Of a stretch of DNA of 64,000 nucleotides, positions 15,491 to 56,600 are shown in pieces (the first letter of the stretch is position 1; each line of letters starts with the position of its first letter). Made by a program: the position numbers and the translations under genes. The notes beneath the pieces were generated by a model that had not been told where the DNA came from, did no database searches, and was given only the letters and a program-made list of their open reading frames with translations. The DNA is from Octopus bimaculoides. Lineage: Eukaryota. The stretch lies in contig NC_068983.1 of the NCBI RefSeq assembly GCF_001194135.2, forward strand, positions 135,480,210 to 135,544,209, given 5' to 3'.

Positions 15491-15640
15491 ATGATGGCCT
15501 TCTTTCGGTTTCTGTCAACCAAATCCAATCATAAAGCTTTGATCATTTCAGCACTATAGTAGAAGATATTTCTCAAGATGCCATTCAATAGGACTGGACC
15601 CCAAATCATGTCATTGGTAAGCAAACTTCTCAATCACTTA
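15491..15640 (-). mobile_element. Degenerate tRNA-derived SINE
   Basis: Diverged match to 46330-46499. Confidence 0.55.
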
Positions 15641-16528: not shown

Positions 16529-17153
16529 NNNNNNNNNNNNNNNNNNNNNNNNNNNNNNNNNNNNNNNNNNNNNNNNNNNNNNNNNNNNNNNNNNNNNNNN
16601 NNNNNNNNNNNNNNNNNNNNNNNNNNNNNNNNNNNNNNNNNNNNNNNNNNNNNNNNNNNNNNNNNNNNNNNNNNNNNNNNNNNNNNNNNNNNNNNNNNNN
16701 NNNNNNNNNNNNNNNNNNNNNNNNNNNNNNNNNNNNNNNNNNNNNNNNNNNNNNNNNNNNNNNNNNNNNNNNNNNNNNNNNNNNNNNNNNNNNNNNNNNN
16801 NNNNNNNNNNNNNNNNNNNNNNNNNNNNNNNNNNNNNNNNNNNNNNNNNNNNNNNNNNNNNNNNNNNNNNNNNNNNNNNNNNNNNNNNNNNNNNNNNNNN
16901 NNNNNNNNNNNNNNNNNNNNNNNNNNNNNNNNNNNNNNNNNNNNNNNNNNNNNNNNNNNNNNNNNNNNNNNNNNNNNNNNNNNNNNNNNNNNNNNNNNNN
17001 NNNNNNNNNNNNNNNNNNNNNNNNNNNNNNNNNNNNNNNNNNNNNNNNNNNNNNNNNNNNNNNNNNNNNNNNNNNNNNNNNNNNNNNNNNNNNNNNNNNN
17101 NNNNNNNNNNNNNNNNNNNNNNNNNNNNNNNNNNNNNNNNNNNNNNNNNNNNN
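16529..17153. other. Assembly gap (N run)
   Basis: Run of N. Confidence 1.
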
Positions 17154-17781: not shown

Positions 17782-18359
17782 GACGAGCCTTTATGATATC
17801 TTGAAGTCGTAGAAACAATATTTACAACGCATGTGACACCAAGATAACAACTAACAATCTCGCGCAAGCGCTATGAGTCTGATTCACCCAACCCAATTAC
17901 TGTAGACGTTAGACCGTCATTTCTAAGCTCTTCTCGGCGTTTAAGACGACGCATCACGATATCGTTTCCCCAGTTTTAAATACAGTGGTTAGTGTGCATT
18001 TTCACCACAGAACCACATCCTTTTAATTGAAAATTAAAATAATCTCGAAATAAAATAACAATGAAATATAAAAATAATCTCTAAACAAATTATTTTTTTT
18101 TCTTTTCTAATTTAAATAGTGCTACCTACCATATTCCCGGTGCCTTTATCTAGCGAGTAATAAATTAGTTTAATTTTAACTGGCAATAATTATAGAACAA
18201 GTATCAAAATATCTTTCATGAATTTATGGGTATCACCTATTTTAGAACTGAAGTCACAAGCCCTATAAGTAGGTACACATCTCAAGTTAAAACGATTCAG
18301 TCAAATAAATAGCCATACCAACAACATTCTCACATAATGAGTTTGTAAATTTTTTTTTA

Positions 18360-19496
18360 CTAACCAATAGGCATATCTTTCATTTGGAGGGCACGTCCAA
18401 ATAACAACTGGGTGTGATTAACGAAATTCAAACACATACTAGGCGTTATGACGGTTACACTTTCGTCAATCAACCTTTCCACAAATCTAAGTTTCCGTTC
18501 AGATTTTGATAATACATTTTGTGGATCACCTGCTGTCATTTCGGAAAGCTGATTGGCTTCCTTCTGTTTGAGTTGAGTCTTAATCACACTCCAGACACTC
18601 TCAAATGGATTTAACATGGGTGAATAAGGCGCAAGACGAAGAAGTGTTGCTCCTTCGAACTCACTTAAGACGTTTTCTAAATCCGAGTGGCAAGAGGCAT
18701 TGTCAATAACCATCACAATTTGTTCACACGAAGTACCATTGCCAATAACTTTTTGCAACAGGTCTCGTACCCATACACTGCACGAGTCACTCCGGTAAGT
18801 TCCTCTTATTCTTTGGAAATCGATCAATCCAGCTTGACAAAGAGCCCCAATCATATGGATAGTCGGACCTTTGGAAGAAGGCAGATGCGCAACTGCACGT
18901 GTTCCTTTCGTTAACCCTCCTTTACTTTTTCTAAGGAAAAGGTTGACATTTGACTTGCTGATATATACAAAGAACTTTCCTTCAGCAGATGATTTCATCA
19001 CATTCTCGATATACTCCTTCCTCAAAAGCTTGTTTTTGTGATTGTTGACTGTCTCTGGGCATAAATGTACTTGCTTCAATGAAATTATTCTTCCATCTAG
19101 ATGACTGGCTATAGTTTGTTCGGACACAATCAATCCATACTTTGAAAGTAAATGTTCGCAAAGATTCTTCAATGTTAATTGTGGACAATCGTTTAACCAC
19201 TCAATAAGTGACTCGATATGTTCATGCTCTATCTTCTTCACCTTATCACGGATACCTCCACGGTGCAAATGTGATGCACGATCTCTGCGTACCCAATTAT
19301 ATGCAGTTGTCTTCTTAACGCCATGTGCTGTAGCAATAGATTTCATATCTTTTCCTCGTTCAGCTGCAGACAGTACACGCTTTCGAGTTTCGAGTGCCGA
19401 CTTCTTGTATGGTCCTCGCTTGCTTCCTCGTTTGACACCTCGTGAACTAGCAGTACTTTCGAACTGACTTTCATTATCTGTAAGCAAACGTAACAT
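18360..19496 (-). CDS. IS630/Tc1-family transposase ORF (378 aa), intact frame, first catalytic Asp lost
   Basis: HTH region, then YISKSNVNL where DE(T/S) is expected, VIDNASCH, and LAPYSPMLNPFE (D-33-E spacing by my count). Perfect 16-bp inverted repeat AAATTAAAATAATCTC at 18031-18046 and 19627-19642. In-frame phase-1 acceptor tttgcttacag at 19478-19479. Confidence 0.85.
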   Translation of the reverse strand: MLRLLTDNESQFESTASSRGVKRGSKRGPYKKSALETRKRVLSAAERGKDMKSIATAHGVKKTTAYNWVRRDRASHLHRGGIRDKVKKIEHEHIESLIEWLNDCPQLTLKNLCEHLLSKYGLIVSEQTIASHLDGRIISLKQVHLCPETVNNHKNKLLRKEYIENVMKSSAEGKFFVYISKSNVNLFLRKSKGGLTKGTRAVAHLPSSKGPTIHMIGALCQAGLIDFQRIRGTYRSDSCSVWVRDLLQKVIGNGTSCEQIVMVIDNASCHSDLENVLSEFEGATLLRLAPYSPMLNPFESVWSVIKTQLKQKEANQLSEMTAGDPQNVLSKSERKLRFVERLIDESVTVITPSMCLNFVNHTQLLFGRALQMKDMPIG

Positions 19497-20385
19497 TGTA
19501 GGAGTAAGTTAAATGATGCAATGTATTCCAATTTAAAACTACTCAACGTAAAATCAAGCAGTTCAAAACACAAACGTCCGCTATGTTTTTATAAAAAAAA
19601 ACAAAAAAAACTATTTAATTTGCTCTGAGATTATTTTAATTTGTTTTGAGGTTATTTTAATCTCGAAGCAAATTAAAATAATTTGCATTATCTCGCTTCG
19701 AGAATATTTAAAGTTGCACTTGAAAGGATTTACACTTTAACATGTCCGGCAATATAAGTGATCAAAATTCTCAAAAAGGAATCGGTTTATTAATGCAAGT
19801 AACAAAACATTATTTAAATGAAGAAGTCATAATTATACTCTATTATATATATACATATATATATTTATTTTTCACGGATGTAATATTCACCCCTCTCCAC
19901 CTAACTATGTGTATAGAGTAGATATGAGCTTTGGCTGCTATTTCTAAAAACCAAATGACTGCGTAGAGGCTCTCCTTTTCGCTCGGGTTTTCTCGTGATT
20001 CCGTTTTACTAAGTAGTAAATCATCGTTTTATGGTATCCATTTAGTTACCGATCGTCTTTGCGAAATAGAAACCAGTCACAGGACGCAAACTTCTGATCA
20101 TTTAGTCGCTATTTTAATGACTCTACTAGCTTCGCTTCCAACGAAAGTATGGAGAGGGAGAAAAGTAATTTACTTCAGAGAAAGAAACGAAGTTATTTTA
20201 CACAGTTTGAGCAGTTAATTTTCAGAAAGCAATTTTAAATAAATAACATTAATTTTGAGACATTCTGATTGAATTAGAAAGAAAGTACATTAAAACAGAT
20301 ATAAACTTATAATTTCCTCTTGTTTGGCGTCCGCGGAGGAATTCTTTTCTTTTGAATCTGTGCTACGGTCTACTTGTTTTGTTGG

Positions 20386-25134: not shown

Positions 25135-26285
25135 CATCATCATCGTTTAACGTCCGTTTTCCATGCTGGCATGGGTTGGACGGTTCGACTGAGGTCTGGA
25201 GAGCTAGTGGCTGCACCAGACTCCAATCTGATCTGGCAATGTTTCTGCAGCTACATGCCCTTCCTAACGTCAACCACTCCGAGAGTGTAGTAGGTGCTTT
25301 TTACGTACCACTGGCACAGGAGCCAGCCAGGCGGGCCTGGCATCAAACACATTCGGACAGTGCTTTTTATGTGCTACTGGCATGGGAGCCAGTCATGGAG
25401 TACTGGTATCAGCCACATTTGGATGATGCTTTTTATGTGCCACTGGCACAGGAACCAGTCAGGGGCTACTGGCATTGGACACGTTCAGATGGTGCTTTTT
25501 ATGTGCCACCAGCATGGGAGACAGTCAGACAGACCTGACATTGACCACATTCGGATGGTGCTTTTTACATGCCACTGGCATTGGAGCCAGTCTGGGGGTA
25601 CTGGCATTGGCCACATTCAGTTGGTGGTTTTTATATGCCACCAGCACGGGAGCCAGTCAGGCGGATCTGGCATTGACCACGTTCGGATGATGCTTTTTAC
25701 GTGCCACTGGCACGGGAGTCAGTCAGGGGGAACTGGCCATAGCTATGATATTTGTTTTACCTGACTCAACAGGTCTTCTCAAGCAAATCATATCGCCTGA
25801 CACATTAGGGGTATTCTTAACAGGGCCAGACATGTGTGGCTGCGATCTCACTTTAGTTGTGAGGTTTTCTCAATCAGCATATCTAGAAAGGTCCAGGTCT
25901 CCTGTCATTGCCCCCACTACAGACTTTGTTACCTAGGTAGCGGAAGCTATTAACTACTTCAAGTTTCTTCTGCAGGCATGTGATGGAATCTGTTTTCTGT
26001 ACATCTTCAGTGTTTATTACCCCAGTGTATCTGCCACACACAAAAACTATTTTCCCAGTTAGCCTTCCTTTGATATTGCTGCATTTTTTATGTGTCTGTA
26101 GCTTGTACTGGGTACATCATATGGAGCTTCTACTCATGCCTTTTCTACAGATCAAGCAGGGCCATCAACCTGAAGGGGATTGTGATTTGACAGCCTTCCT
26201 ACTTATTAAGGCCTTGGTTTTTGCTAGGTTAACCCTAAGGCCCTTCAATTCTAGACCTTGATTCCACACCCTAAACTTCGTCTCC
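25135..26285 (-). mobile_element. 5'-truncated RTE-type LINE with tandem repeats in its 3' UTR
   Basis: (GAT)n tail at 25135. 25930-26285 is the reverse complement of the 40430-40770 family. Confidence 0.8.
25294..25745. repeat. 66-bp tandem repeat, about 7 diverged units
   Basis: Units start at 25294, 25360, 25426, 25492, 25558, 25624 and 25690 (exact 66-bp period). Confidence 0.9.
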
Positions 26286-36340: not shown

Positions 36341-37783
36341 AAAAAGGTATAATATGTCTATGTGCAGCAAATGTAGGCTGAGATACAGGGGTCGCAGATG
36401 GACAGACAGGATTTTGCTTTTATTATCATAGATGATAAGATGCAATTTGAGGGAGATGTGACAACTATTTCTAGCAGGATGAGTGACTGGATAGTGGTTC
36501 TCTTAATCAGGGGTAATATGAATGATAGTAGGGTGGTGGTGGTGGCAGTAATGATACAAGTGTTATTGGAGGTGACAATGGTCGTAAATAGTCCCTTGGC
36601 CAAAGTCCAGGTTGACTTATGATCTGAACAATGCAGTTTATATGAAGTGTCATGTGTTGATGGTAGAAGGTATCCACGATAAATATTGACTCAAGAAAAA
36701 TCTAAGCTAGAACTTGAAATAGTTAAACCTCATGGAGATGACATAAAAAATATGTTAAATAGAAACTAAAATGATGATTAATGCTTCAGATATCAAATCT
36801 GTTGTTTTTTTTCTCATATATATTTTCAGCTCATCTATAACCAAGCTATCTTTTGGATTTTTCTTACACACCCAACAGAAAATTAATCAAATCCTCTCAA
36901 AGTGATATTTGCGTCATTGCTAACTTCATGCATTATACTTTGTGACTTAAGACTGGAAACCTATTACAATCTAAATATTCCCCCAAATTTTTTCTACACT
37001 TACGGATTTTGGCCACTATAATTTACTTATGCAGTCATGAAAATATCTTGTAGCCATAGTCTGTGAAGTTCTTTGTGTTACCCAATTTTAAAAGATCATA
37101 GAAAATAGAAGATAAATAAGTTTTTCTTTCACTTTCTATTTAATGACTGGAAGAATCTAGTATATAAGTTATAGCTCTTTAGAATAGGATTTTACTGCAT
37201 TAATTAGATATTAGACAACTTAATACCAATATCAGTGTTTCTGTGTCCTTTTCATTTGATATTTTTTCACAGCAAAGTGAAAAAAAATCCTACTCTCAAT
37301 GAGAATATGAAAGTGTAATAGGTATGGATGAGAAGAATGAAACTTGCTTACCCCTCCATTCTGTAACTGGAAGAAATATCTGACTCAATATTACCAAAAT
37401 TTGAATCCCACAGTTTCATTACTTTTGCATACACTGAAGTGGATATTTAAAACTATGAAACCATGTAAACATATGTGACAAAAAGTAAATCCTTTGGTGG
37501 GTTGGTTGGATGGATATAATGGGTCTGACAAACAGAGGTAGCAAAACACAATTATTGTAAAAACCTATTTTACAGGCCTTTACACTGCTAGCTTGTTATA
37601 AAATGTATGTATTAGAAACAAAAAAATATTGAATAATACTTATGCCACTATTTCAATGGCTTTCCAACCATTGACCATACAACTATACCATTTAGTTTTC
37701 AGCTCAGTAAAGTCTTCTAGTGATATAACTAATCCTGGGACATAATACAATGGATATATAATATTTTAAGCTCATGAATTTGT

Positions 37784-38131
37784 TACTCTTTTACTTGTTT
37801 CAGTCTTTTGACTGTGGCCATGCTGGAGCACCGCCTTTTAGTCGAGCAAATCGACCCCAGGACTTATTCTTTAGAAGCTTAGTACTTATTCTATCAATCT
37901 CTTTTGCCGAACCGCTATGTTACGGGGACATAAACACACCAGCATCGGTTGTCAAGCGATGTTGGGGGGACAAACACACACATACAAACATACACACACA
38001 CATACATATATATATATATACATATATACGACGGGCTTCTTTCAGTTTCCGTCTACGAAATCCACTCACAAGGCTTTGGTTGGCCCGAGGCTATAGTAGA
38101 AGACACTTGCCCAAGATGCCGCGCAGTGGGA
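37784..38131 (-). mobile_element. tRNA-derived SINE, head cut by gap
   Basis: Close match to 46044-46499, including the internal CA/TA microsatellite. Confidence 0.85.
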
Positions 38132-38215
38132 NNNNNNNNNNNNNNNNNNNNNNNNNNNNNNNNNNNNNNNNNNNNNNNNNNNNNNNNNNNNNNNNNNNNN
38201 NNNNNNNNNNNNNNN
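38132..38215. other. Assembly gap (N run)
   Basis: Run of N. Confidence 1.
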
Positions 38216-38307: not shown

Positions 38308-38377
38308 GGTGACTATCCAGAAGGTAGTTGCTGTATATATTTTGGGATGGGACCACTTTTTCCCAGACTTTTTTTAT
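38308..38377 (-). CDS. Candidate phase 0-to-1 adaptor exon linking the CG-1-like exon to the BTB exons
   Basis: Acceptor tatatattttag, donor ACC|GTAAGT. 70 nt open frame IKKVWEKVVPSQNIYSNYLLDSH. Caveat: may sit in repeat-derived sequence. Confidence 0.4.
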
Positions 38378-38966
38378 CTAAAATATATAACAATGATGAA
38401 TTAGTAGTTATTTGTTAATTCTGTTGTGTCTGGGAAGAGTCATTCTCTTTTAATGCTTTATAATTTAACACACTCACCAGTAAAATTTCCATTCATTTAC
38501 TTATTTATTTTTCTAAAACTTTTCATTGCATCTTGCAACCTTCTCTCTCCAGACACAAGAGAATATGCTTTAACACATGAACTCACATAAAGAATCTTGC
38601 AAACCAAATCCCAAAACGAAATATGAACATTATTTAGCAGTTATCCACGAACTGGATGCAAATATTTAACAATTTAAAAAAGGCCTTCACTATTTCTATC
38701 AAGTGATAGGAATTTTGACAACTCTTTGGTTTTCAAAACCAGTAAGAAGGCAAAGATTAAAGAAATACCATAACTCAAAATATCTTTGTAGGCATGAAAG
38801 TGATGAGTGTTTTAATGAGTTCTAGCATCTCTAAAGTAATTTATAATGATTTATTAGCACCAGTTGGAAGACTTCAAGAGAACCCCAATGCCTGACAAAA
38901 GACTAAAATAACCGGAAATCTTTTTCATTATGATATTCTACTGGCTTCAACTTCATTTTAACATAT

Positions 38967-39408
38967 CTTTTACTTGTTTAAGGCATTAGACTGTGGCCAT
39001 ACTGGAGCACAACCTTGAAGAACTTTTAGTCGAATGAATCGAGCCCCCAGCATTTTTTTTTTTAAGACTGGTACTTATTGTATTGGTCTCTTTTGTTGAA
39101 CTGCAAACACACCAACACTGCTTGTCAAGTAGTGGTGGGGGACAAACAGACACCACACACACACATATATATATATATATGTATGTATATATATTATATA
39201 TATATATATATATGTATATATATTATATATATATATATACACACAAGAAAGCCTTCTTATAGTTCTCGTCTACCAAATCCACTGACAAGGGTTTGGTCAG
39301 CCTAAGGCTATAGTACAAAAAACACTTGCCCAAGGTGCCACACAGTGGAACTGAACCTGGGAACGTGGTTGAGAAGCAAGCTCCTTACCAAATAGTCACG
39401 TCTGCACT
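38967..39408 (-). mobile_element. tRNA-derived SINE, diverged copy
   Basis: Same family as 46044-46499, with a (TA)n core. Confidence 0.8.
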
Positions 39409-39559
39409 TACATTTTTAAAAAGTTTGTAAATAAATTTTAGATAATACTTGAAAAACATATATGTAAAACCTATCAAAGGGATAAGTTCTACAGATCAGG
39501 GATTTTATAGGAGTACCAGGCCTTTCTACTACTTAAATCTGTAGATTGGTCTTATCTAA

Positions 39560-40105
39560 TGTTTTTCTAAATAGGTATGCTAGTTCACTGCCAAGACATG
39601 ACACTCTGGTATTATTTGTTGTCATACCATGAGTTGACCGTATCTATCTTTTTCCTAGTCTTTTCTGTGTTGTTCCAGGATTTACTCCTGTATAGCGGGC
39701 AGATCCCCTTTGCATCACTCTCTATGATGGCTTTGTACTTAGCCGTGGCTCCTTTTTACACTCTAATCCTGTCCCTTTGGTTATAGCCAGAGAACTGCAT
39801 GTGGTGGATGAAGTGTTGTATGTGTCTTTCCAATTCCATAGGGTCGCACATGCAAGACACATTCCTCATCACTCTCACCAAGTCTGCTATAAGAATATTG
39901 AACTTGGAATTGTCCACAATAGCTGTGTTCTGGTGGACAAGGTATTTAGAGGCCATCAGTTTGACATAACGAGAGTAAAGGGTCTGGACCTTATTGTTCT
40001 TGGGTTCTAACCAGAGTTCTGTGTCTAAAACTGGTAGCCTATAGTTGGGGTGCTTGTTTGAGTAGTCTATCTTGACTTTGATGGATGAAGTTAGCTATTT
40101 GCTAG
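39560..40105 (-). mobile_element. Penelope-like element RT thumb/linker remnant
   Basis: IDYSNKHPNYRLPVLDTELW...YVKLMASKYLVHQNTA...LVRVMRN...HHMQFSGYNQRDRIRVY...GICPLYRSKSW resembles the region after the RT in Penelope-like elements. Confidence 0.65.
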
Positions 40106-40129
40106 ATGCTTTCCATAGTGTTAGCTTCT

Positions 40130-41180
40130 AGATCATCAACATTGTCTTGTAAAGAGAGTCTGCTGAATGTCAACCCAACAGAAGGACCAGCTATCCAAAT
40201 TGACAGTACCTTGGTAGATAAAGCAATTAAGGGTATGAAGACAGGGATCACCACAGAGATGCTTAAAATATCTGGCGGTGTCAGCTATAGTCTAGTCACC
40301 CATATGGTCAATCAGGTGATACATGAAGGAGTCATACCCATTGACAGCACCATAGTCAACCGAGAGCTTCTCTATGCTGATAACTTTGCTCTAATAGCTG
40401 AATTACTATCAGAACTAAGGAGAAGTTTCAGATGTGGAAGCAAGGTCTAGAATTAAAGGGCCTTAGAGTCAATCTAGTAAAAACCAAAGTCTTAATAAGT
40501 AGGAAGGCAGACAAACCACAAATCCCTTCAGGTAGATGGCCCTGCTCAGTCTGTAGAAAAGGTGTAGATAGAAACTCCATAAGATGTACCCGGTGTAAGC
40601 TATGGACACATAAGAGATGCAGCAATATCAAAGGAAGGCTAACTGGGAAGATAGTTTTTGTGTGTGGCAAATGTTCAGGAGCAGTAAACACTGAAAATGT
40701 GCAGACAACAGCTTCCGTCACATCCCAGGAGGAAAAAAACTATAAGTAGTTGATAGCTTTTGTTAATAATGTAGTAACGCCTGCGCATGCGTAGAATTAA
40801 ACAAGCAAGCGTTTCCCGCTCAATTCATTCTCTTTTACGCTGGCCAGCGATTGAGCATGGACGTGTGTTTAATAGCTGTCCCTACATCTTTCGGTCTTAT
40901 ACTCGACAGCTCGTTATTCTCACCTCTAAAGATGTATAACTAAAGATATGTATGTTTTACCAAGTAAATAAATGTTGTTTAAGTTGTTTAGTCTGGAGTT
41001 CAGCGTTCCGTCTATTTCTTTAATTTTATAGTAGAAAGTCAGGTATACAATCTAAAGATGTATAACCCACTTTCTACTAAAATACAAATAATAAATGTTA
41101 CCTAGGTAACCAAGTCAGTAGCAGGGGGTGGTTGCTCTGAGAGTGTAGCTGCTAGAATAAGAATAGCCTGGGCAAAGTTC
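40130..41180 (+). mobile_element. RTE-type LINE fragment (RT, PHD-like Cys/His finger), interrupted by a 330-bp insertion
   Basis: LLYADNFAL..WKQGLELKGLRVNLVKTK, then CSVC..CTRC....H..C..CGKC. Resumes at 41096 with YLGNQVSS.GGCSESVAARIRIAWAKF. Confidence 0.8.
40766..41095. mobile_element. Unclassified insertion flanked by 5-bp duplication TGTTA
   Basis: TGTTA at 40761-40765 and 41096-41100. Removing one copy restores the LINE sequence seen at 25930-25960. Confidence 0.7.
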
Positions 41181-41300
41181 GACTTTGCCTTTCATCCTTT
41201 CGAGGTCGATAAATTAAGTACCAGTTGTGTGCAGAGGTCGATCTGATCGACTGGCTCCTCGAAAATTTCGAGCCTTGTACCTAGAGTAGAAAAGAATATT
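41178..41300 (+). mobile_element. SINE 3' part (gcctttcatcctttcgaggtcgataaattaagtaccag box)
   Basis: Inverted copy of the same family at 42970-43130. Confidence 0.7.
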
Positions 41301-42969
41301 TTACGTGAGTTATTCCCCCTTAAACCACGGGGTTAAGTTGGTAAAATCTAGCTGTTTTCTTTTCCTTGGGGGGGGGGGGGGTCGGATTTTAGTGTTTATT
41401 TTTAAATAGATGAGGGTCAAACCAACAGGTTTCGTCATTATATAACAAGTAATCAATATCCACCCACCTCTCTCATCCAAGATGTTGAGATAAGGTAGTG
41501 GACGGCATGAGAATAAGGGCAAGAAAGGTGGGTGGGGCGTTCGAAAGAAAGAGGAACATCGGTTATTTTAAGGCGGGTGGAATTATTTATTTGACCAGAC
41601 GAGCAACCAGGATAAGAAACTTGTCAACAGCATAATTATTACATACACACCTGTCCGCACATTACACGCTGTCGGTTGGGATCAGTACAAAATATAGACA
41701 AACACATATACGTGAGTCACAGATGGGTAATGGAAGCTGTCTTAACAATTTACATAAGCTTCCACTTGCGAGCGGGAAAGAATGCATAGTATTGCAGTGA
41801 ATAATAATAATAATAGGTTTATGCATGACACCTGTATGCATGCTTGCTACATGTGAATGTATACGTAATTAGAGAGGGTGTATTATTTTATTACATCCGT
41901 CTCACAAGTTTGTCGGGAAAGGGCACAGAAATAAAAATGTGAAAAAAAAAAAAGGATTTTTTTTGGACGACAAATTCTTTCACAAAAGAAAACAACCCCC
42001 TCCCACTTCCTTGCCTTTTCCCTTTTCCATGAGGGAGTGATAGTTATTACGAAAGTCCATAGATCAAAGTTTATATTCGTCCCACGAGACGAGTGTAATA
42101 GTAAGAATTCACCGCAAAAATTTACCTTGCCTATTATAATGGGTAAGTATTCTTATCCCCACCCCTGACAAATACCTATTCTATGCACTCATCTCACCAT
42201 CATCTCTTCTACCCATCATACCAGCCTTCCTCTCATTGAAGGAAAACACTCGATTTGTGCATATTGAATATATCTATCTCCTTCGCCAGACACCTATATC
42301 CTGCAACCTCACTTTCGTATGTCTTCCCAAATCATGATGCTTGAGTCAGATAGGAGAGCATGCGGGGAGGAGGGGTAATCTCCCCCGGACATGTTCTCTT
42401 GAGGATATACTCTGACTTTTCATCATATCTCATCTACACACCACCCACCTACATATAATGTGGGGTAGCACTGCATCACCTCACACTCAACCCACCCAAT
42501 CACACTTATCACTCTCTCATTAATACCTTGGAACTGCTTTTCCCTCTCTTTTATAACCTCCTTCCATCTTATCTTTCTTTTACACTCCACTTTATTCACT
42601 TGAGTATAAGCCGGGGGGGGGGGGTAGCATTGCATTTTCTCCTATTCAACCCTCCCCATCATCCTATCACTATAAATGTCATTCACTGTTCCCCTTGACA
42701 CTACTTTTTCCCTTTCCTTCCTTTTATACCTTTCCATAACACTTTCCCGTACAACCCTCTCTCAACAATAAGCAAAATTTATTCTGTAATATCTTCCTAT
42801 GCACACTCCATATAAATATACACAGGTCAACCAATCAGCACAAACCATTGCTCAGCTCTGTTTAGACAGGATTTCGTCCAGCAAACCTCTTGAGTGCTAT
42901 GCAAGATCATGAGTGGTGTGATTGGGTCAGGCAAATCCAAGCAAGCTCAAACAGATGATGACAGCATTA

Positions 42970-43130
42970 AATATTCTTTTCTACTCTAGGCACAAGGCCT
43001 GAAATTCTGGGAGAAGGGGCCAGTTGATTAGATTGACCCCAGTAAGCAACTGGTACTTAATTCATCAACCCTGAAAGGATGAAAGGCAAAGTCGACCTTG
43101 GTGGAATTTGAACTCAGAATATAAAGACAG
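42970..43130 (-). mobile_element. SINE, same family as 41178-41300
   Basis: Reverse complement matches 41178-41300. Confidence 0.7.
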
Positions 43131-44512
43131 ACAAAATACTGCTAAGACAGCATTAAATATTATAACACTAATTTAACTAAGTCTGAAAAGTTCTGTGTTA
43201 AAAATATTGTGAGAAGTGGAGAATCTAATATTTCTGGTTCTTGCACTTGCCCTTCATCTGAAAATGAGGAAGTGAGATAAAATGGTGTTGCTACAATGTT
43301 TACTTACCACAACCAAAAAGACAAGACTAATTCTTCTATTTCTCAATCTCAGGTAGAGGGCAATGGACATAAATTTTAAATTCTTCACTCCTCACAACAA
43401 TTGAACTTATCAAACTTTTCCATCAGTTTCCATGGAATCCAGATTTTAACTTCTTATAGAAAAAATGGGATTCTCACAGCTAGGATACTTTTGATCATAA
43501 ACCTGCTTAATTAAGGCTGATTGAAAACTAAACAGCAGCTGAATTAGTAAAAAGTGGCATCCATTAACTCTTCTCATTTCCTCTCATTGCCTGTTTGTTT
43601 CCCCATTTCTATGCTTCAATCCTATTTTATAGCCATTTAATTTTCATAATCCCTTCACAGATGAAGGAGCCTAGTCCATATAGTTATAATTCATTTCTGC
43701 TACACCGACTTATTCTAATTCATAAACTCTATTGAACAAGATCTTACCAATACAGACTGGTTCATGTATAACAGATAATTGGAGTGAGTTTAGTGGCATG
43801 AAATGTTCGGTTTGTAACAAAGTTTCAAACCATGACTTTTGGACAAATAATCTCAAACCTTGATCATTAACCCTGTATAAACTCAATAATAATAAAACAA
43901 TTATTTTATGGCAATTACTAATTTCACGCCTCCACTGTAGTTTTACAGCTTAACAAATATGAATTATTTTCTGTTTCTGCATTGTTGCAAGGAAAATAAA
44001 TTTATAAATAGATTCCATTGCATAAGTCAAATAATAAATGCTTTTCTTAAGCTGAAAACTGTCAGTTAACTACAAAACAATCTGCAAGTTGACATATCAG
44101 AAATTTCAACCGAGACCCAATAACCTAAGTAATGAATAAATCTCACTACTACATTTTTTTTTTTTTCAGATTGCATCAATTCCATTTTATTTATCAATAA
44201 TCATTTTATAAGACTTGAAGAGATGGATAACAAAGTTACTTCAAGCAAGATCTAAACTCTGAAATAAGGATATGAGCTAAATGTAATAAATAGCAATATA
44301 CTGTTGTCTGAAACAAACGTCACTGGTGATTTCATCAGTTCTTTAATCCAATGATTTCTGAATGACATACATAGCTTAGGTTAATATATAATAGTATTAA
44401 AATATTCTACAAGTGAAAACACCCTAACAGAAGTGACTAATCAGGTCTGGAAATTGTTGATTAAAATTATCTTTCTGCAAAAGACTGTCATCTTTCCAAA
44501 ATCAATAAAACA

Positions 44513-44655
44513 TTATCATCATCGTTTAACGTCCATTTTCCATGCTGGCATGGTTTGGACGGTTTGACTGAGGACTGGCAAGCCAGAAGGCTGCACCAGG
44601 CTCCAATCTGATCTGGCAAAGTTTCTACAGCTGGATGCCCTTCCCAACGCCATGT
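44513..44655 (-). mobile_element. RTE-type LINE 3' end
   Basis: catcatcgtttaacgtcc...gctggatgcccttccc as at 5600-5740. Confidence 0.75.
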
Positions 44656-44684
44656 ACTAATTAAATACTAACTGGTATTCTGTT

Positions 44685-44930
44685 AGTTACAATGATGAGG
44701 GTTCCAGTTGGTCTGATCAACAGAACAGCCTTGTCATGAAATTAATGTGCAAGTGGCTGAGCAATCCACAGGCACATGTATCCTTAACATAGTTTTCAGT
44801 GAGATTCAGCATGATACAGAATGTAAGGCTGGCCTTTTCAAATATAAGAACTATTCATTTTTGCCAGCTGAGTGGACTGGAACAATGTGAAATAAAGTGT
44901 TTTGCTCAAGGACACAACACACCGCCAAGA
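44685..44930 (-). mobile_element. SINE-like repeat, family of 22560-22838
   Basis: Reverse complement match to 22670-22810; gtgtccttgagcaa box at about 44905-44920 on the minus strand. Confidence 0.65.
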
Positions 44931-46043
44931 AATACAATTACAACCTTACAATACCCTCAACCACTATCAAGGATGAGATCTTACAAGAGCTGACAGTATT
45001 TTAGTAAGTGAATACACAATTACTACAGATTGAGTCAACAATATGATGCCTGAGTAAGAAGGAGAATGGTAAAGGTGTTACTGAATGGTCTTAAATCAAT
45101 AATAACTATGATTATATCAACTATTCCACAGTACTGCTTTAAGTCCCTTGCTATTCTTGCTATATATAAATGATATCTTCATTAATCCCATCCTCTTCAT
45201 TAAAATGGCTTGCAGATGATGTCTTGATGTGCAAACCTAAAATACTAACACTGATTATCATTCTTTTTAACAAAGTCTCGTCTATCATCATTAGAAGCAT
45301 AGGTCAATACATGGCAAATAAAATCCAGTACCTCCAGAGATGAAGTAGCAATTAGCCTCTTGGAATATTGGAATATGCCCTACTCATACTAGCTTGATGA
45401 TATACACCTAGATAGAATTAGCTAATTGAAGATAGCTCAGTGTCATCATCACTCAAAAACTGATTTTGGACTAAAGTTTACCTCAATAATAAAAGAATGT
45501 AATAAAAGTTTACACATATTTACGAGGTCTCTTTCTTATAAAACACAACTAAGATCTTTAGTGATAGAAAGGAGACTGAAAGGTTCATGTGCACAAAATC
45601 TTGCAAGACCCACTGACAGTAGATCATGAAAAGATATTGAAAACAAACATGGCATATACAATTTTTTGTCTCTTTTTTTCAGGAACAGCTTTATGTATTG
45701 ATTAACAATCAACAGCATTGGAAAGCATAAAGATTAAAGTTGTAGTTGAGAAAAAGTTGGCTGACACAAAGGACTGGAAGCAATCTGAATATTGGAAAAG
45801 AGTTACCAGTATCATGACGCTTTGCACTGAGTATCAAAATGCTAACATTATGACTGCTGCTCAATGCCTGTTGAAAACTGTAAGGGCTGTAAGACGTGAC
45901 ATGGACAGCTGCAACAGAGACTATGGAGTCATGGCTAGCAGATCTTCAGGCTCAATTCAGACTGCTATATGAAGCTGCTGAAGACTGTGGTCAATCCCTG
46001 GATGGAGAGGGTTGCTGCTGGAAGGAGAATATGGCTCTTTGCC

Positions 46044-46499
46044 ATACTCTCTTTACTCTCTTTTACTCTTTTACTTGTTTCAGTCATTTCACTTCGGCCA
46101 TGCTGGAGCACCGCCTTTAGTCGAGCAAATCGACCCCAGGACTTATTCTTTGTAAGCCTAGTACTTATTCTATCGGTCTCTTTTGCNNNNNNNNNNGACT
46201 TATTCTTTGTAAGCCTAGTACTTATTCTATCGGTCTCTTTTGCCGAACCGCTAATTGACGGGGACATAAGCACACCAGCATCGGTTGTCAAGCAATGCTA
46301 GGGGGGACAAACACACAAATATATATACATATATATGACGGGTTTCTTTCAGTTTCCATCTACCAAATCCACTCACAAGGCTTTGGTCGGCCCGAGGTTA
46401 TAGTAGAAGATACTTGCCCAAGATGCCACGCAGTGGGACTGAACCCGGAACCATGTGGTTGGTAAGCAAGCTACTTACCACACAGCCACTCCAGCGCCT
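46044..46499 (-). mobile_element. Full-length tRNA-derived SINE
   Basis: Minus-strand head AGGCGCTGGAGTGGCTGTGTGGT (A box) and GGTTCAGTCCC (B box), a CTTGGGCAAG central box, and an (AGAGTAAA)-type tail. Interrupted by the 10-N gap at 46187-46196. Confidence 0.85.
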
Positions 46500-46502
46500 C
46501 CA

Positions 46503-46835
46503 GAAATATTAAAAAAGTAGTTATTGGAGAATTTCTACAACTTCGCCATCCCCAATTTCTGATCTGCTAATTACTCCAATTGTAATCCTGCAGATTACTA
46601 TGTGTGGGGCACCATTGAGACAGACAGACACCAACTGCTCTGCCTGCAACATGAGGCCAAGCTGGTGGCCAAGATTAAGGAGATGTTTGAAGATCTTCAC
46701 AGGGACACTGAAGAATGCACAAGTCAGGTTCTGGAGCCTTTTTTTTGAGGTCGTGGTGAAACCTGAGAGCAGCTACTTTAAGTAAACTGTTATCTCCCAG
46801 GCATAATCTAGTTGATATGTTTTCTTTTCCTTTTA
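46503..46835 (+). mobile_element. Tc1/mariner (maT/DD37D-like) transposase C-terminal remnant
   Basis: YSNCNPADYYVWGTIE..TNCSAC...LVAKIKEMFEDL...RFWS.FEVVVKPESSYFK* matches the SPDxNPxDYxxW...RxEAVIxAxGxYFE end motif. Confidence 0.65.
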
Positions 46836-48402
46836 TGCAAACTATCAAATTTAGAAAGAACATCTTGCAGTATCAGTACTGGTATTTTAATTCGCAGAGA
46901 AAAATCTGATTATAAAAACAAGCATTCATTCTTAAATCGCATGTTTAACAGTGTACTTAAAAGGAATATACAATTTCCACAACCAATCACTAATGGCAGA
47001 ATATAACTAAAACATCGCTCTTTCCATCGCTAGACTGAGAACACTTGTTCTACGATTAAGTATGACTTCTGATACAGACCTAGTAACTTACGAGTTAAAA
47101 CTGAGTAGAGAACAGAAGTGTAGAATAAAGCATCATAAATGTTAATGGTATTATAATTTACGATGCCCATATCGTGAAATGATTTTTTAAATGCATCGTG
47201 GACAAATTGACACCACTTCAGTTAGGGAACTAAATAACTGACAATTGTTTTGGTAAGTAAAGCATTGAGCCAGATGCCTTACCATTTGGGCCAACTTAAT
47301 TCATAAATAAACTTCTGTTTTACAAGCGTACAGTTTACAAAGGGTGGAGATGGATCTGTTGGAAACAACCTAAAGAGGTCCAGTCAAGCATACATTTATT
47401 TTTTAGCTTACAATTTTTTTTTATTTCTCGTGCGATTTCATATAAATTAAAATTAAATACAGCCAGTTTTAAAATTTGAAAAATAAAATTAAACTATCTA
47501 AAGTTCTAATTGCTTGGTAAGCATTAAAAACCAAGTTGTAATAGTAGGCGTGTCAAGTTTGCTAAGAGTTCACTTCCTGTTTCGGAGGGAGGGAACCGGC
47601 GAAAAACTGTACAATTCAGAACCATGAGTTATTAAACACGGAGCATTTATTCTCCCTCTCCCTCAACATGAACTCACCTCACATAGTGATAAAAATGGAA
47701 TAAAAATATAGGAAGTCGTGGCATTGATACATTTCCAAAGAGCATTAACGCTCTCAGTAAAAAAAAAAAAGTCATACCAATTAGGAATATAGGCCAGACA
47801 CAACATTAGCAGAAAACAGCTCTGCGATGTTTATAATAGTACTTTATATATATCTCTCTATGAGCCTGCTTACAATATATAACTGCATTCCTGACTATAA
47901 TGTATTTCTATCTGTACTTAAGTAAATTTTAATTATATTGTGCTCGAGCACATATTTACATTTAAAAACAATTGAGTCAAGATCGATGATCAGTTGTTTC
48001 TCTCTTTATTACAAATACACTTGTTTTCAATGCCGAGAACCAGTTAGGAGGAACTAAACCTAACTCCATATATTACATGGTCCTTCGTTTGAAAGATCTT
48101 TAAAAGATTTGGAACTGTTACAGAACTATCATATTCCTCTCCCCAATACTCCCGAGAAAAAAAAACATGAACATAAAACACGATTTCTGAAATATATCTG
48201 CAATATATTGCACTCGAATAGAAAATCAAATTAACTTATGATCTTTTTATTACACTCTATACACTGAATAATGTAAGTTTTTGTTGCCCATCAATAATAA
48301 AGATATACGGGTTGCTTCTCCATTCCGTTGTGTATATTCTTTCAAAATAAGTTTTCAATTCTTACAATTCAAACAAGTAACCCAAATTTAAGTTAAACTT
48401 AC

Positions 48403-48915
48403 CTCATATATATCTGCTTTCTTCATAACGTGTCCATTATTCCTTTCAAATAAATCTTTCTTTCTAATAAGTTGTTCAGGCAAAGGTACGATAGATCGAA
48501 CTGAATGCGAAGAATGTCGGCTTTTTTTTCTGCTGGGAGCAACCGATGTATCCGTACACAGTTTTTCATCACCGATATAATGAATAACAACTTTCTGATC
48601 ACTGTCCAGTAATCTGTAGACATGCTTTTGAAAATTGTTTTTTTGTCCTTCTTTGGTCATTAAATAGAAGAAACTTTTCCGTAAAGCTGGGCGTCTGTTG
48701 AGGGACATAGTCGATGTACCTCTGTTCGACCAACGATAGCCATCTGTTCGCCAATTATCCAAATACATACGAAGTCTAGGTTGGAATAAATAGATTTCTC
48801 CCCCGGCAGGACGATTTGGAATTTTTGATACAAAGTTCGAACTTGGAAGACATAAAAGCTTCATAGCTTCTATTGTCTCAAGTCTTGTATATCTTCTTCT
48901 TGTATAAGGCTCCAT
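48403..48915 (-). CDS. CG-1 (CAMTA-type)-like DNA-binding domain exon, probably MULE-transposon derived
   Basis: MEPYTRRRY...PNRPAGGEIYLF...DNWRTDGYRWSNRG...LRKSFFYL...FQKHVYRL...VVIHYIGDE. 513 nt open from the ATG to perfect donor GAG|GTAAGT (phase 0). Possible non-coding upstream exon ends at CAGG|GTAAAT near 49454. Confidence 0.75.
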
Positions 48916-50696: not shown

Positions 50697-53600
50697 ATGG
50701 CAAGGGACTTTCGTAGGGTAGCGTTTTGTTTTTTGGTTTTCTCACATTTATATCCTTCATCGATTTATAACAAATCACATACACCCAGACATATGCATGT
50801 GTCTGGTATATGTATGTATATTATGTATTAGGTCGTCAAGTATGAAATTTGTAGTAAGATATATAGTAAACTTTGTCAGCTGCTCATTTTGCGCCATTAT
50901 TATATCTTGACAATCTTTATTTTTTTGTTAGAAAGCTGACACATTTATTTCTTTATTCTAACTCATTTTGTGCTTTATAAAGTATTTATAAATCGTTTTT
51001 TACTGTTTTTGTTTAGAGATGGATAAGTCAGAAATTCGTACAGTTATGAAATATGAGTTCTTTCTTTGAAATGCAGCATCACAGACAGCTTGGAATATTA
51101 ATGGAGCATTTCATTCTAATTTCATATTAATGGAGTATTTCATGCTAATGTTATTACACAGCAGACATTTTACGATAAATAAGTACAATCCCCCGACATT
51201 ATCATTGTTATTGAGTTAATTGGTTTGCAAAATTTCATTCCGGTAACTGACCTCACAAATGAGCAATGCTGTCGTCCAGAAACAAAGGTGGATAATGATG
51301 AACTGAAAGCCACTGTCGAGTCAGATCCATCTCAAAGTGCCTGTGAATTATTGTTGTTTGGTGTTAGCAAGCAAACAATATTGACTCACCTAGTTCAAAT
51401 CGGTAAAGTGAAAAAGTTGGATAAGTGGGTTCCACATGACCTCAATGAAAATCAGAAACAGCAACGTTTGGAAGCCTGCATTATGCTACTTTCTTGTCAC
51501 AAAAATGAATCATCTTTGAATTGAACTGTAACATGTGATGAGAAATGGATCCAATACAACAACCATAAACGTTCAGCACAATGATTAGACAAAGATGAGC
51601 CACCAAAACACAGTCCATAAAGCAAAATTCATCAAAAGAAGCTGATGGTGTGTGTATGGTGGTCTGGTGCAGGTGTGATCCATTATGATTTCATTAAACC
51701 TGGCTCATCAATCACGGCCAAAGTATACTGCAGCAAACTGGACCAAATGATGCAGAAACTTACAAAAAAACCCAGCCTAGATTAGTCAAGAGATCCACTC
51801 CTATTTTATTGCAAGACAATGCCAGACCACACATTGCAAAAATGACATTGGCGAAACTACACAGGTTGGAGCTGGGAGTTCTCCATCATCTACCATACTC
51901 ACCTGATCTCGTCCCCACTGACTACTACTTCTTCCAGAATTTGGATAACTTTTTGATAAAAAAAATTTTTAATTCCGACGATGCTGTAAAACAGGCCTTC
52001 CAAAATTTTATTGACTCTAGATTGCTAGGCTTTTACAGTTCCGGGCTAGACAAGCTACTGCTGAAATGGCAAAAGTGTATTGACAATATGGAGGCATACT
52101 TTGATGAATAAAATTATTCCTTGTATTTATAAAACATTAGCAAACTTTTTTTTTCTTTTCTATAAATGTCATACTTGACGACCTAATATATATGTGTTTA
52201 ATTTCTATCTTTCAAATACTTCTCGTAAAGCATTGATCAACTGAAGTTGTGGAAGAAGATATTGTTCAAAGTTTTGAGCAGCAGGATCGAACTTGAAACC
52301 ACATGGGTATAGAATGAATTTCCGAACCACACAGACTTTCTGTGTTCATTCTTGCTTTGTAAGAGATTTAATCTAAGACTTGAGTTGAAACTGAAAAGCT
52401 GACTCATTTAACCATTTAAAATACACACACACACACACACATATATATATCATTACAATAATGAAGTGTCAACAAGTTTTGATGCTCATCTGCAACCTTA
52501 TCATAGCGTGATCTTATGTTTCAGATGTATACCAAAACTTTTTGATACTTTATAGTATACAGTATAATTAAGAAATAAAACAAAAATGAATGTAATGGTA
52601 TATATGTATGTGTTTAAATGAGTGATATGACTATTCTACTTGAGAATAAATGCATCATCATGTATTCTGGGAGGAAAAACCCAGCTTTTACATACACCCT
52701 CAATAACACCAATCTTAAGAAGTCTGTTAGTGAATGTGACCTGGGTATTATTGGTCAAGAAGGCCAAGGATGTCTTAACATCACTAGTAAGACCTTTGTC
52801 GGGTGCTCTCCAGCTATCTATTTAAATTGCATATGACTATGGTATGTCCACATCTAGAGTTTGCATCACCCCTCTGGAACTCCTATAAGCATATCATTCT
52901 CGTGGAAACTGTTCAGAAACATCCAACCAGACGAATACCTGCCATCAGGCACCATATTCTGAACATCTTACTTCTCTGGGCATGGACACATTAAAGCTCT
53001 GACATTTGGCAGCTGACTTGGTAGACACCCACAAGATTACCCACCATCTTTCCAACAACAACCTTGGGCACTTTTTTGAATTCCATACATCTAACACTCA
53101 TCAAAAAACAACATGGCACCCATGACTTTCAGAAACATTTTTTCATGGTGAGAATTGCTGAAGCATGAAGTAAACTACTTGCATCAGTTATTAACTGTCA
53201 AGACACTATATCCTTCAAAACTTTCATGCTTCCTGAAATTCATCAATAGTGTACATGATGTCCCCCCACCCCATTTCTTCTTGCTTTTTTCTCTTTTTTA
53301 AGACTTATTCACGGTTCACTTCCTGTGCATATTCTATGTACTGTTCATGCAGTTTTGGTTACTTTTTGTGATGCACCTAAGCACTGTATACATTAAGTTC
53401 ATTATATATATATATATATATATATATGATTTCTAACATAGGCACAAAGTTATACAAATATATATTAGTGACAGAGGCAGCATTAATACCAAGAGGTAAT
53501 ATTTATCTTCACTTAAATGTGGATGTTCTGTTTGAACAAACTATACTGCAGTAGATACCATGAGAGAAACTGTCATATTGGCTTTTGGTGCAAAATACAA

Positions 53601-56600
53601 GCTTGTTTATATCTCCACCACCTCCAGTGCTGAGACCACTAGATCATGTGTTTTTGACCTTCCTTAGTCTTGTCAATGATGGACGTTTGACCACTAGAGA
53701 CAGCAGTAACTCATTTCCCTGCCAGCAATATATAGAAAAACAGTGCCAGAACTAGTGCTGGTGTCATGATTAGCCAGTGGTGGATTGTCTAGTTGATTAT
53801 ATCAACTCAAATATGTGCCTGATACTATTTTATTGACACTGGAAGGATGAAAGTTAAAGTGGGCCTTGATAGGATATATCAGAACATGACTCAAAACTGC
53901 AAAATATTTCGTCTGAAATTCCACCAATTTTACTATCCACTACCCTAACAATGGTGATAATAATTGTTCTGTGTTATTGTCAACAAGGGGGACATGACGA
54001 GAGAACAGGACAGGGACAAATCATAAATATGGTGGAGATTTTACAGAATCAAGCATGAAAAACAGCATAAATACAAAAGAAGAACTGGAAAAAAGGCCCA
54101 CTTGAGTTGGGGAGACAATCCGTTTGAGTCACTTGAGAAATTCCACTGATACCCTCTCTGATAGGGGTAAATATCATTACCCAGTGGCACTTTTTGGCCT
54201 ACAGGCACATCTTGAGAACAGATTCATACTTGGCACTCTCACTCACTTTTCAACAAAATTGGAGGGCAGCACTTCTCTTAACCCTTACCTTCCTTACCAT
54301 AGAGTAATTGAAGAAATTGAAAAGGAAAGAGATTGTCATTAGTCCTTTCAATCCCAGCCCCTTCATTGCCTCTGTTACCATAGCTACCAGATAGAGGGAG
54401 ACTGTATACCTTCTCAGTCCAAAGAAAGGCAGCAGAGCAATATTTAAATGGACCTAACCTCAATGAAATCTGGTGGAGTAGCACTGCCAAACCAGGAATT
54501 TCTGGAAGTTGACAATGCTAAAAGGTTAATGCTCAGCTAGCTGCATTGCCAAACTGGTAGAGGATTGTAGAGCCTGACGACATTCCAGATGGTTGGTGCC
54601 CAATCTCTGTCATTGCTTTGCAAGCTCTAGTAAAGAGACAAGCAGTGAAAAAACATGCCTGAAAAATAGTAGTTACACCAGCTTCCTATAGAGGAAAATC
54701 TGTGGGTACTTGGCCATATCCGACCAAAATATTCTACTTGCTTTATCTTCTAACTGGTCAGATCTGGCCTTTTACACCAACCCTCTAGTGTTACTTTAGA
54801 AATAAACATTCATATCATCAAAATCTCAAAGCTATGAAATAATGCATGATGAATTCAAAATAATGTGAATGCATGAGCATTACATTTGACAGAGTAATCT
54901 GAATGCTAATAGGTTAAATCAACACCAGTATATGGCTGGTACTTATTTTATTGACCTCAAATTGATGAAAAGTATGGGATTTGGAATCATTACCTTCCTA
55001 AACATCAGAGTATAAAGTCAATCCACAATTATTTTACTAACAACAATAATAATATGAATCAACTCTCATGGATTGTGAGCAAATGAGGTTTATTTTCCAA
55101 CATAGTCCCCCTGTTGGTCCACACACTTCTTCCATCAGTGTTACATTGGTGAAGAAGCTTTCATTCTGTTGGTCAAAAAAGTCAACAGCAGATATGATGT
55201 CGTTATCACTGCGATACTGGTTCCCAACCAAATGTCTTTCCATGCTGAGGAACGGGTGATGGATGGAGTCAAATCAGGAGAATGATCAACTAGTTCAAAG
55301 CCACAGATATGCACAGTAGCAATTGAAAGTGAGGACTTGTGTGCTGGAGCATTGTCCTGATGAAACAAGACCCCTTTCATCAGCTTTCCTGGGCTTATGA
55401 TCTTGATAACCTTCCGTAACTGCCTCAGCAAGTGACATAGTACTCTCCATTGATGGTGTGGCCCTTTTGAGGATAGTCAATAAACACAATGCCATTTGAT
55501 CCCCAAAAAACTGAGGCCATCATCTTCCCTGCAGAAATGACCTTGGCCTTCTTTGGAGGAGGTGAGGAAGTGTTTCCACTGTATAGATTGTCTGTTTGTC
55601 TCAGACTCAATGTGATGAAGCCAACACTCATCCTGGATTAGGAAACATTATTCAAGGAAACTAGCTGGATCTGCCTTAAACAATGCCAGATTTTCCTGTG
55701 ATGTGATTAGCCTGGTGCACTTTTGATCAGGTGTCAGAAGATGTGGTACCCACTGAACAGAAACCTTCATCATGCCAAATTCATTGTACAGAATATTCTC
55801 AACTCTCTCAAGGGATATACTAATAGCATTGTCTGTTTGATCCATACTCAATTGCATGTCATCCATCACCTTGTGGTAAATATGATCAATGTTTTCTTCG
55901 GTAGTGGCAGTTGCAGGTTGACCTTGGGTTGTCTTCAAGATTCTCTCTTCACCTCTTAAATTCAGCCGTCCACTTTTGCACTATTAATAAATCTGAAACG
56001 CTATCCCCTAATGTAGCAACCATGTCAGTATGAATGTCCTTGGGAGTTAAACGGTTTTTTTTTCAGGTACTTGGTAACATCACAATAACAAATTTTGTCA
56101 ATTTCAAGAGAAGTCACTACTACTTAGATTTGAAATCTTCTTTGAAGTAAGATGTCAGTTTATAAGAAAAGAAACAGTGCAGTTAATAAGAAATTGAAAT
56201 TAATGCCTGCAAGTTTTCACAGAACTTTTTTCATGAACTTTTCAGCTCACTTTTGTATTAGTGCAGCATAAAACAAAGCAAATACGCTTCTATTAGCAAC
56301 AAATTTTTGCAACATCTATTTTTGTTTTTCTTAGAAAGAATATTTATAGGCAAGATTATCTGCTTTGCTTAAAATTCTCGCTTTCATGGAGATATATTCT
56401 GAAGGAATCTCCCATCCATCCAAGAAAATTCAGATTGAGACGGGTTTGCATTTAGTAGTTAATGTTCTAGATAATTTTCACTCACTCAGTATAGTATCTA
56501 TTTCCAGTTTGGCATGCACCACTCAGTGCTTGAAACAGTATTTAAGAAGTAAAGTAAGTTTAAATTAGATAAAATACAGTTAGTAACTATTGAATGTAGT

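Follow-up and report, generated by a model that had tools for sequence, protein, structure and literature searches.

A CG-1-like DNA-binding exon is one of three predicted alternative first exons of a BTB gene in Octopus bimaculoides

The Drosophila genes lola and mod(mdg4) combine a BTB common part with many alternative exons, each of which encodes another DNA-binding module (C2H2 or FLYWCH). In both genes, the BTB domain is N-terminal, the variable exons lie 3' and are joined by trans-splicing, and the resulting regulators share a dimerisation domain. In vertebrates (tetrapods), host-transposase fusion genes have reportedly arisen by alternative splicing, as Cosby et al. are said to have described in Science in 2021. 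The DNA-binding domains of MULE, FAR1 and FLYWCH proteins belong to the WRKY-GCM1 fold class. To our knowledge, the CG-1 domain has so far been known as the hallmark of CAMTA factors. Mukherjee and Moroz 2023 report that, in octopus, a BTB/POZ domain is present in most THAP and CENPB proteins (PMC10027918). Here we describe a BTB gene of Octopus bimaculoides that lies in a stretch of 64,000 nucleotides of contig NC_068983.1 (assembly GCF_001194135.2, positions 135,480,210 to 135,544,209). This whole stretch is referred to as the window, and all coordinates below are counted from its first letter.

We interpret the locus as a minus-strand cephalopod BTB/POZ gene, orthologous to LOC115209547, in which alternative first exons encode different transposase-type DNA-binding domains and in which a CG-1-like first exon (exon A) reaches the BTB body through a small middle exon (exon B). 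We give this reading a probability of nearly nine in ten. The exons of the CG-1 route are the following:

48915-48403, minus strand: exon A, the first coding exon, 513 nt, 171 codons from ATG to GAG, phase 0
48397-48402, minus strand: consensus splice donor GTAAGT, after GAG
38377-38308, minus strand: exon B, 70 nt, bounded as ttttag/ATAAAA...GTCACC/gtaagt, converting phase 0 to phase 1
14945-14881, minus strand: exon C, the common acceptor exon, 65 nt, beginning tttcag/GT TCC AAT GAG..., accepting phase 1
14010-13820, minus strand: exon D, linker region, 191 nt
12759-12429, minus strand: exon E, linker and N-terminal part of the BTB domain, 331 nt
11989-11012, minus strand: exon F, the remainder of the BTB domain, then a long C-terminal region of low complexity, 978 nt with the stop

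Joined as A-B-C-D-E-F, these exons kept 715 codons open, with all introns bounded by AG/GT and all phases compatible, up to a TGA stop in exon F (11014-11012). The translation was identical, residue by residue, to UniProt entry A0A0L8H9F2 ('BTB domain-containing protein', Octopus bimaculoides), whose residues 1-171 correspond to exon A. This supported a chain that had been proposed in a first-pass annotation made from the letters alone, which led from exon A through 38377-38308 to the acceptor at 14945 and the BTB exons and gave 715 amino acids (aa) as one of two product lengths. A0A0L8H9F2 shares a 90 % cluster with Octopus sinensis XP_036357330.1 (isoform X2, 719 aa) and Octopus vulgaris CAI9720206.1. 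A protein of Argonauta hians, GAB1599697.1 (722 aa), has an N-terminal CG-1 domain and the same BTB body; it aligned with the 715-aa model end to end in one piece, across both junctions, with 71 % identity, and it has a stretch of 71 residues that is identical in exon A. A Pfam scan of the full 715-aa protein returned CG-1 and BTB only (BTB, PF00651: 28.9 bits against a threshold of 20.5, residues 370-472) and no TIG, ankyrin, IQ or MULE catalytic match, in agreement with the earlier remark that such parts are missing.

The BTB exons 12759-12429 and 11989-11012, used as a query, led to a 609-aa THAP+BTB protein (97 % identical; XP_036357329.1, LOC115209547 isoform X1; O. vulgaris CAI9720207.1), and mapping of this protein to the window gave the shared exons and a THAP exon. 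The Argonauta protein came from an exhaustive profile search in which the CG-1 exon was the query. A word-indexed protein search with exon A yielded two distant homologues and missed A0A0L8H9F2, XP_036357330.1 and GAB1599697.1, which are 83-100 % identical to the query and were recovered by exhaustive search and exact-sequence look-up. Absence from the word-indexed search was therefore not used as evidence.

Exon B encodes IKKVWEKVVPSQNIYSNYLLDSH and the first base of an Arg codon. It had been put forward as a phase-0-to-phase-1 exon with a GTAAGT donor, and its bounds, its phase and its conserved peptide all agree with that assignment. We compared the 23-residue middle peptide of the Argonauta protein with all open 23-codon windows of the 33.5 kb from 48402 to 14946, minus strand. 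Exon B ranked first among the 8,580 windows with a score of 31 (runner-up, 17); it was the sole AG..GT-bounded window to score above zero, and its length matched the 70 nt inferred for the Argonauta segment. The peptide IKKVWEKVVPSQxIYSNYLLDSH recurs in the proteins of O. bimaculoides, O. sinensis and O. vulgaris. The concern that 38308-38377 could be an unspliced multicopy repeat was not borne out, no second copy covering exon B being present within the 64-kb window. Two other acceptors suggested by the first-pass annotation, 28387 and 19477, and the 744-aa alternative product were not supported: in all orthologues, the peptides of exons B and C follow each other with no insertion, and acceptor 19477 falls within a reading frame of 382 codons that belongs to a Tc1/mariner-like element.

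Two further first exons were identified upstream of the common acceptor:

29820-29568, minus strand: THAP first exon, 253 nt, from ATG to CAA G/GTACGA, phase 1 (THAP, 38.4 bits)
17781-17298, minus strand: pogo/CENP-B-type helix-turn-helix (HTH) first exon (Brinker DNA-binding domain and HTH_Tnp_Tc5), 484 nt, from ATG to AAA A/GTAATT, phase 1

Both would splice straight to 14945. The THAP route gives a 605-aa THAP-BTB isoform, for which the orthologous annotated isoform is XP_036357329.1 / CAI9720207.1. The pogo-type route gives a 682-aa model that agrees at 670 residues with the 686-aa O. vulgaris protein CAI9720209.1 ('Pogo transposable element-like 6'), which reads ...QRKKS/SNEYDK at the junction. 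The codon completed by the first two bases of exon C depends on the exon that precedes it, being Arg after exon B (C+GT), Gly after the THAP exon (G+GT) and Ser after the pogo-type exon (A+GT). The three first exons (CG-1, THAP and pogo HTH) all enter 14945 in phase 1, and each is matched by an annotated protein. On the evidence of these sequences, one BTB gene is predicted to swap transposase-derived DNA-binding domains by means of alternative first exons. Each first coding exon would have its own promoter; the CG-1-like domain would choose the DNA targets of its isoform, and the BTB domain would serve for dimerisation or for the recruitment of partners. One gene would in this way provide regulators in which the effector part is constant and the target specificity exchangeable.

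Past the pogo-type donor, the frame (...RKKSNYFLYIP; to 17245) resembles, by eye, what we take to be a continuing pogo transposase before it meets a stop, as expected for an exonised insertion. An assembly gap (16529-17153) begins 145 nt past this donor.

Related arrangements were found elsewhere in cephalopods. In the paralogue LOC106872008, a single BTB body is preceded by an STPR or a CENP-B/HTH N-terminus, depending on the isoform. Contigs of 3.5-4.2 kb from other cephalopods, which are probably transcripts, encode THAP+CG-1+BTB (901 aa) and a FAR1/ZSWIM3_N-type domain+CG-1+BTB (1,047 aa), each in an uninterrupted frame, and another has a FLYWCH-like domain (by eye) and BTB in a single frame. 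At least six kinds of domain were thus seen in the BTB family: CG-1/MULE-type, THAP, pogo/CENP-B HTH, FLYWCH-like (by eye), FAR1/ZSWIM3_N-type and STPR.

We also considered exon A as an internal exon, as in the THAP+CG-1+BTB arrangement of other species, and rejected this. The sequence just upstream of ATG 48915 offers, by eye, a lone AG with no pyrimidine tract as an acceptor, and the public proteins of O. bimaculoides, O. sinensis and O. vulgaris begin at the equivalent of this ATG.

A short motif near the C-terminus, SKPYP[VI]SLF (SKPYPVSLF here; window ~11085-11115, minus strand), is kept in every cephalopod BTB family member seen, within a poorly conserved region. It may be a docking motif.

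Further comparison was possible with ctg117233l (ENA ERZ21867824, L001), a contig of 172 kb that is filed under metagenome and appears to be nuclear DNA of another cephalopod. It contains a homologous CG-1 exon, 61 % identical and with the frame kept, whose donor (GAG/GTGAGT) stands at the position aligned to the window donor. On the same contig (L001, L003-L005), three BTB genes of this family form a tandem array and share their strand with a single CG-1 exon; the BTB terminal exons lie ~30 kb upstream of this exon and, on its downstream side, at ~29 and ~77 kb. When the window and L001 were compared as DNA and in translation, the CG-1 exon alone aligned, and no further exons were found in this way. 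Nothing conserved was seen past the homologous exon in the 10-kb flank of L001 that would correspond to a nearby terminal exon after donor 48403, and the orthologous models all use the distant exon and none a nearby terminal one. Between the domains of L001 and of a second homologous copy, L002, the nonsynonymous rate (dN) was 0.043 and the synonymous rate (dS) 0.60, which gives a dN/dS of 0.07; synonymous sites are saturated between the window and either L001 or L002, and this pair is the only one with a usable value. By this measure, the CG-1 exon appears to be under purifying selection in these more distant relatives.

The most serious competing explanation is that the CG-1-BTB protein is an artefact of automated annotation, in which gene predictors linked exon A to the next BTB gene, 34 kb downstream. 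Exon A would then never be spliced to that gene and would be either a small gene of its own or the remains of a decaying MULE. The four public models are all computational predictions, the exons are separated by introns of 10 kb and 23 kb that contain short interspersed nuclear elements (SINEs), a Tc1-like element and five gaps, and the stop found 4 codons past the exon A donor makes a short stand-alone product formally possible. These points are met by several others. The length, position and bounds of exon B are conserved between Octopus and Argonauta and make it stand out among the 8,580 windows, and the models, drawn from different annotations, agree across four species. The probable transcript contigs of other cephalopods hold CG-1 and BTB in one frame, another cephalopod contig keeps the order and strand of the CG-1 exon and BTB, and the dN/dS of the L001/L002 pair is that of a constrained exon. 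We consider an artefact improbable and retain the interpretation of exon A as a first exon of the BTB gene.

Exon A starts in a good context (ATAATAATGG) and encodes a CG-1-like domain at approximately residues 10-118, followed by a basic tail (PSRKKSRH...). Its translation contained all of the features that had been read from the letters, namely 171 codons, the GAG/GTAAGT end and three motifs: WRxDGYxW (W55-R-T-D-G-Y-R-W62), FQKHxY (F95-Q-K-H-V-Y100) and VIHYIGDE (V110-I-H-Y-I-G-D-E117). The CG-1-like character of this pattern was substantiated as well. Exon A alone matched the Pfam CG-1 hidden Markov model (PF03859) with E = 2.1e-9 and 37.6 bits over profile positions 21-114 of 116, above the curated gathering threshold of 23.5 bits; within the full 715-aa protein, the score was 33.7 bits. 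A profile-profile alignment (hhalign) of 40 octopus/MULE-type domains with 18 plant CAMTA CG-1 sequences gave a probability of 98.7 % and E = 3.1e-16 over 109 aligned columns, in which exon A is ~21 % identical to CAMTA CG-1. The CG-1 assignment is firm and far beyond chance. A PDB sequence search with exon A returned a borderline NAC match alone (E = 0.009).

An AlphaFold2 model of residues 1-134 was confident (predicted local distance difference test, pLDDT, 92.6; predicted template modelling score, pTM, 0.84) and placed an antiparallel sheet after a short helix. In Foldseek searches of the PDB, the six best matches were NAC and WRKY DNA-binding domains (probability 0.75-0.99). The CG-1-like domain is modelled as an antiparallel beta-sheet that may be akin to the DNA-binding domains of WRKY and NAC proteins. 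Among the nearly invariant columns of the domain alignment, no set of conserved cysteines for zinc was apparent. In CAMTA3, W26, W75, H88, Y102/Y103 and Y132 are essential for DNA binding and W118 is dispensable (PMC10417383). We mapped these residues onto exon A through the profile alignment, which is gapped around H88:

CAMTA3 W75: W62 in exon A, kept
CAMTA3 Y102/Y103: F83/Y84, kept (aromatic)
CAMTA3 Y132: Y113, kept
CAMTA3 W26: R11, not kept
CAMTA3 H88: R75, not kept
CAMTA3 W118 (dispensable): R101, not kept

DNA binding by the exon A domain is plausible but uncertain, and CGCG-box specificity is not to be assumed, since W26 and H88 are not kept.

The relatives of the exon A domain bear on its origin. 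Among 48 long relatives (300-1,600 residues), 38 had a CG-1 match, 11 a MULE transposase domain, 3 Transposase_mut, 2 SWIM and 5 BTB, and none had TIG, ankyrin or IQ. Examples of their architectures are CG-1+MULE+PHD and CG-1+MULE. In the MULE-bearing relatives, the CG-1-like domain sits N-terminal to the MULE catalytic domain and the SWIM finger. At the level of the family, these counts uphold the earlier description of exon A as a MULE-type DNA-binding domain. We consider it probable that the CG-1-like exon derives from a MULE-type transposase, namely from its N-terminal DNA-binding domain, and not from a CAMTA gene. By its sequence, the gene fits a host-transposase fusion, in which a DNA-binding domain with transposase relatives is spliced to a host BTB domain.

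CG-1-like domains were also seen in varied settings in other animals, namely in proteins of Owenia fusiformis (P0059), Capitella teleta (P0020) and a fish (P0034), and in P0041. These settings comprise BTB+C2H2+two CG-1 domains (in an annelid), a tandem row of six CG-1 domains (in Capitella) and CG-1 together with arrays of C2H2 fingers. This variety suggests that such domains may have been captured repeatedly.

The position of its relatives at the N-terminus of MULE transposases, in a neighbourhood rich in transposon remains, could also mean that exon A is part of a MULE-type transposon, mobile to this day or dead only recently, which inserted upstream of the BTB gene; the frame would then be open solely on account of the youth of the insertion. 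A MULE catalytic domain is absent from the spliced product, however, and the exon region has no second copy within the window. The exon is moreover orthologous and nearly unchanged in four annotated species, as the identical 71-residue stretch of Argonauta illustrates, and purifying selection is seen in more distant relatives. A young insertion is accordingly very unlikely. That exon A belongs to a true CAMTA gene, with its remaining exons overlooked or situated beyond the window, can be practically dismissed: the matching Pfam family is defined on CAMTAs and the homology to CAMTA CG-1 is real, but the identity is only ~21 %, the spliced product lacks any TIG, ankyrin or IQ match, 0 of the 48 long relatives have one of these domains and 11 have a MULE domain, and the orthologous proteins end in BTB.

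Several observations weigh against the reading of the locus as a BTB gene with a DNA-binding, MULE-derived CG-1 first exon. The public proteins that match the 715-aa chain are automated gene models, and use of the junctions in vivo is a prediction. Exon B was judged to be non-repetitive within this window. The Foldseek E-values for the modelled fold are weak (0.02-0.19 for the six best matches, none reaching 0.001), with template modelling (TM) scores of 0.28-0.58; target-normalised TM scores were 0.31-0.58 at E-values of 0.02-0.07. Two of the five essential CAMTA3 positions (W26 and H88) are lost. Transfer between CG-1 and MULE genes may have gone from transposase to host or the reverse.

The introns of ~10 kb and ~23 kb that separate exons A, B and C contain SINEs, the Tc1-like element and five assembly gaps. 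One of these gaps is the following:

46187-46196: assembly gap of 10 N, with flanks 46140-46186 and 46197-46243 forming an exact 47-bp duplication

The intron between exons A and B holds this gap, which falls within a SINE copy (~45980-46500). Both flanks of the gap align to overlapping parts of the SINE copy at 37783-38131, and the overlap consists of those 47 bases. We infer that the duplication is the signature of overlapping contigs joined with a spacer and that the true sequence would be continuous, with a single 47-mer. As the gap is intronic, no reading frame is at issue. A second gap (38132-38215) starts 92 nt downstream of the exon B donor and touches no exon.

SINE-like repeat copies were noted at 37783-38131, 38966-39399, 45980-46500, 9048-9212 and 15483-15630; two of them bracket exon B, which is not part of either. 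The Tc1/mariner-like element occupies 18022-19685 (minus strand) in an intron and has a 382-codon frame (19508-18363) with HTH and DDE_3 matches. Its imperfect terminal inverted repeats (18022-18118 and 19590-19685) contain repeated AATAATCTC motifs. Two similar PHD-finger frames were found on opposite strands, 40402-40746 (plus) and 25886-26116 (minus), reading ...WTHKRCSNIKGRLTGKIVFVCGKC... and ...HKKCSNIKGRLTGKIVFVCGRY..., and these are probably copies of one repeat family. Upstream of the gene, broken frames at 51183-52108 (plus) and 55040-55980 (minus) have, by eye, the look of mariner-type transposases.

As a gene model, the locus adds nothing, since A0A0L8H9F2 is already public as an uncharacterised automated entry. 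What may be new, in a modest way, is the CG-1/MULE-type member of the cephalopod fusions of DNA-binding domains with BTB, together with the three-way arrangement of first exons. In the literature searched, we found nothing relevant for CG-1 combined with MULE, transposase or Mutator-like, no CG-1/MULE-type member of the octopus fusions, and neither a BTB docking-site family nor CG-1 as an animal MULE domain.

A BTB effector body that receives three unrelated transposase-type domains in one splice phase is a compact example of how transcription factors are built from transposons, in a lineage for which expansions of such factors have already been noted (PMC10027918). If true, the presence of CG-1 in animal MULE transposases would bear on the source of the CAMTA DNA-binding domain. 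Should this be confirmed more widely, the CAMTA domain would join the transposase-related beta-sheet domains beside WRKY, FAR1 and FLYWCH. We tentatively propose, short of expecting it to hold, that cephalopod BTB genes are docking sites for captured transposase DNA-binding domains, three of them on one acceptor here, that they form a mirror-image and independent counterpart of lola and mod(mdg4), and that CG-1 is also widespread in animal MULE transposases.

Among the described systems, the octopus THAP-BTB and CENPB-BTB factors belong to the same family as this gene, and the THAP and pogo/CENP-B-type isoforms of this locus fit them. That paper (PMC10027918) mentions CG-1 0 times, and in its passages considered here the different domains are not presented as alternative first exons that share a BTB gene. 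CAMTA factors have a homologous DNA-binding domain, with the equivalents of W75, Y102/Y103 and Y132 kept here. Unlike CAMTAs, the octopus protein has no TIG, ankyrin, IQ or calmodulin-binding parts, and W26 and H88 are not kept. In MULE transposases, the relatives of the exon A domain stand N-terminal to the MULE catalytic domain and SWIM, and the fold is modelled as WRKY/NAC-like. The octopus gene keeps the DNA-binding domain alone, whereas FHY3/FAR1 retain the whole transposase-derived body. As in the vertebrate host-transposase fusions, a transposase DNA-binding domain is spliced here to a host effector domain; unlike in those fusions, a single acceptor of a single gene takes up several unrelated domains of transposase type, and this is in a mollusc. 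The likeness to lola and mod(mdg4) lies in the use of one BTB common part with several exons for different DNA-binding domains. No sign of trans-splicing was seen in the octopus gene, and none was looked for. The loci are not homologous, and the variable exons of the octopus gene are 5' first exons, with the BTB domain encoded downstream of them.

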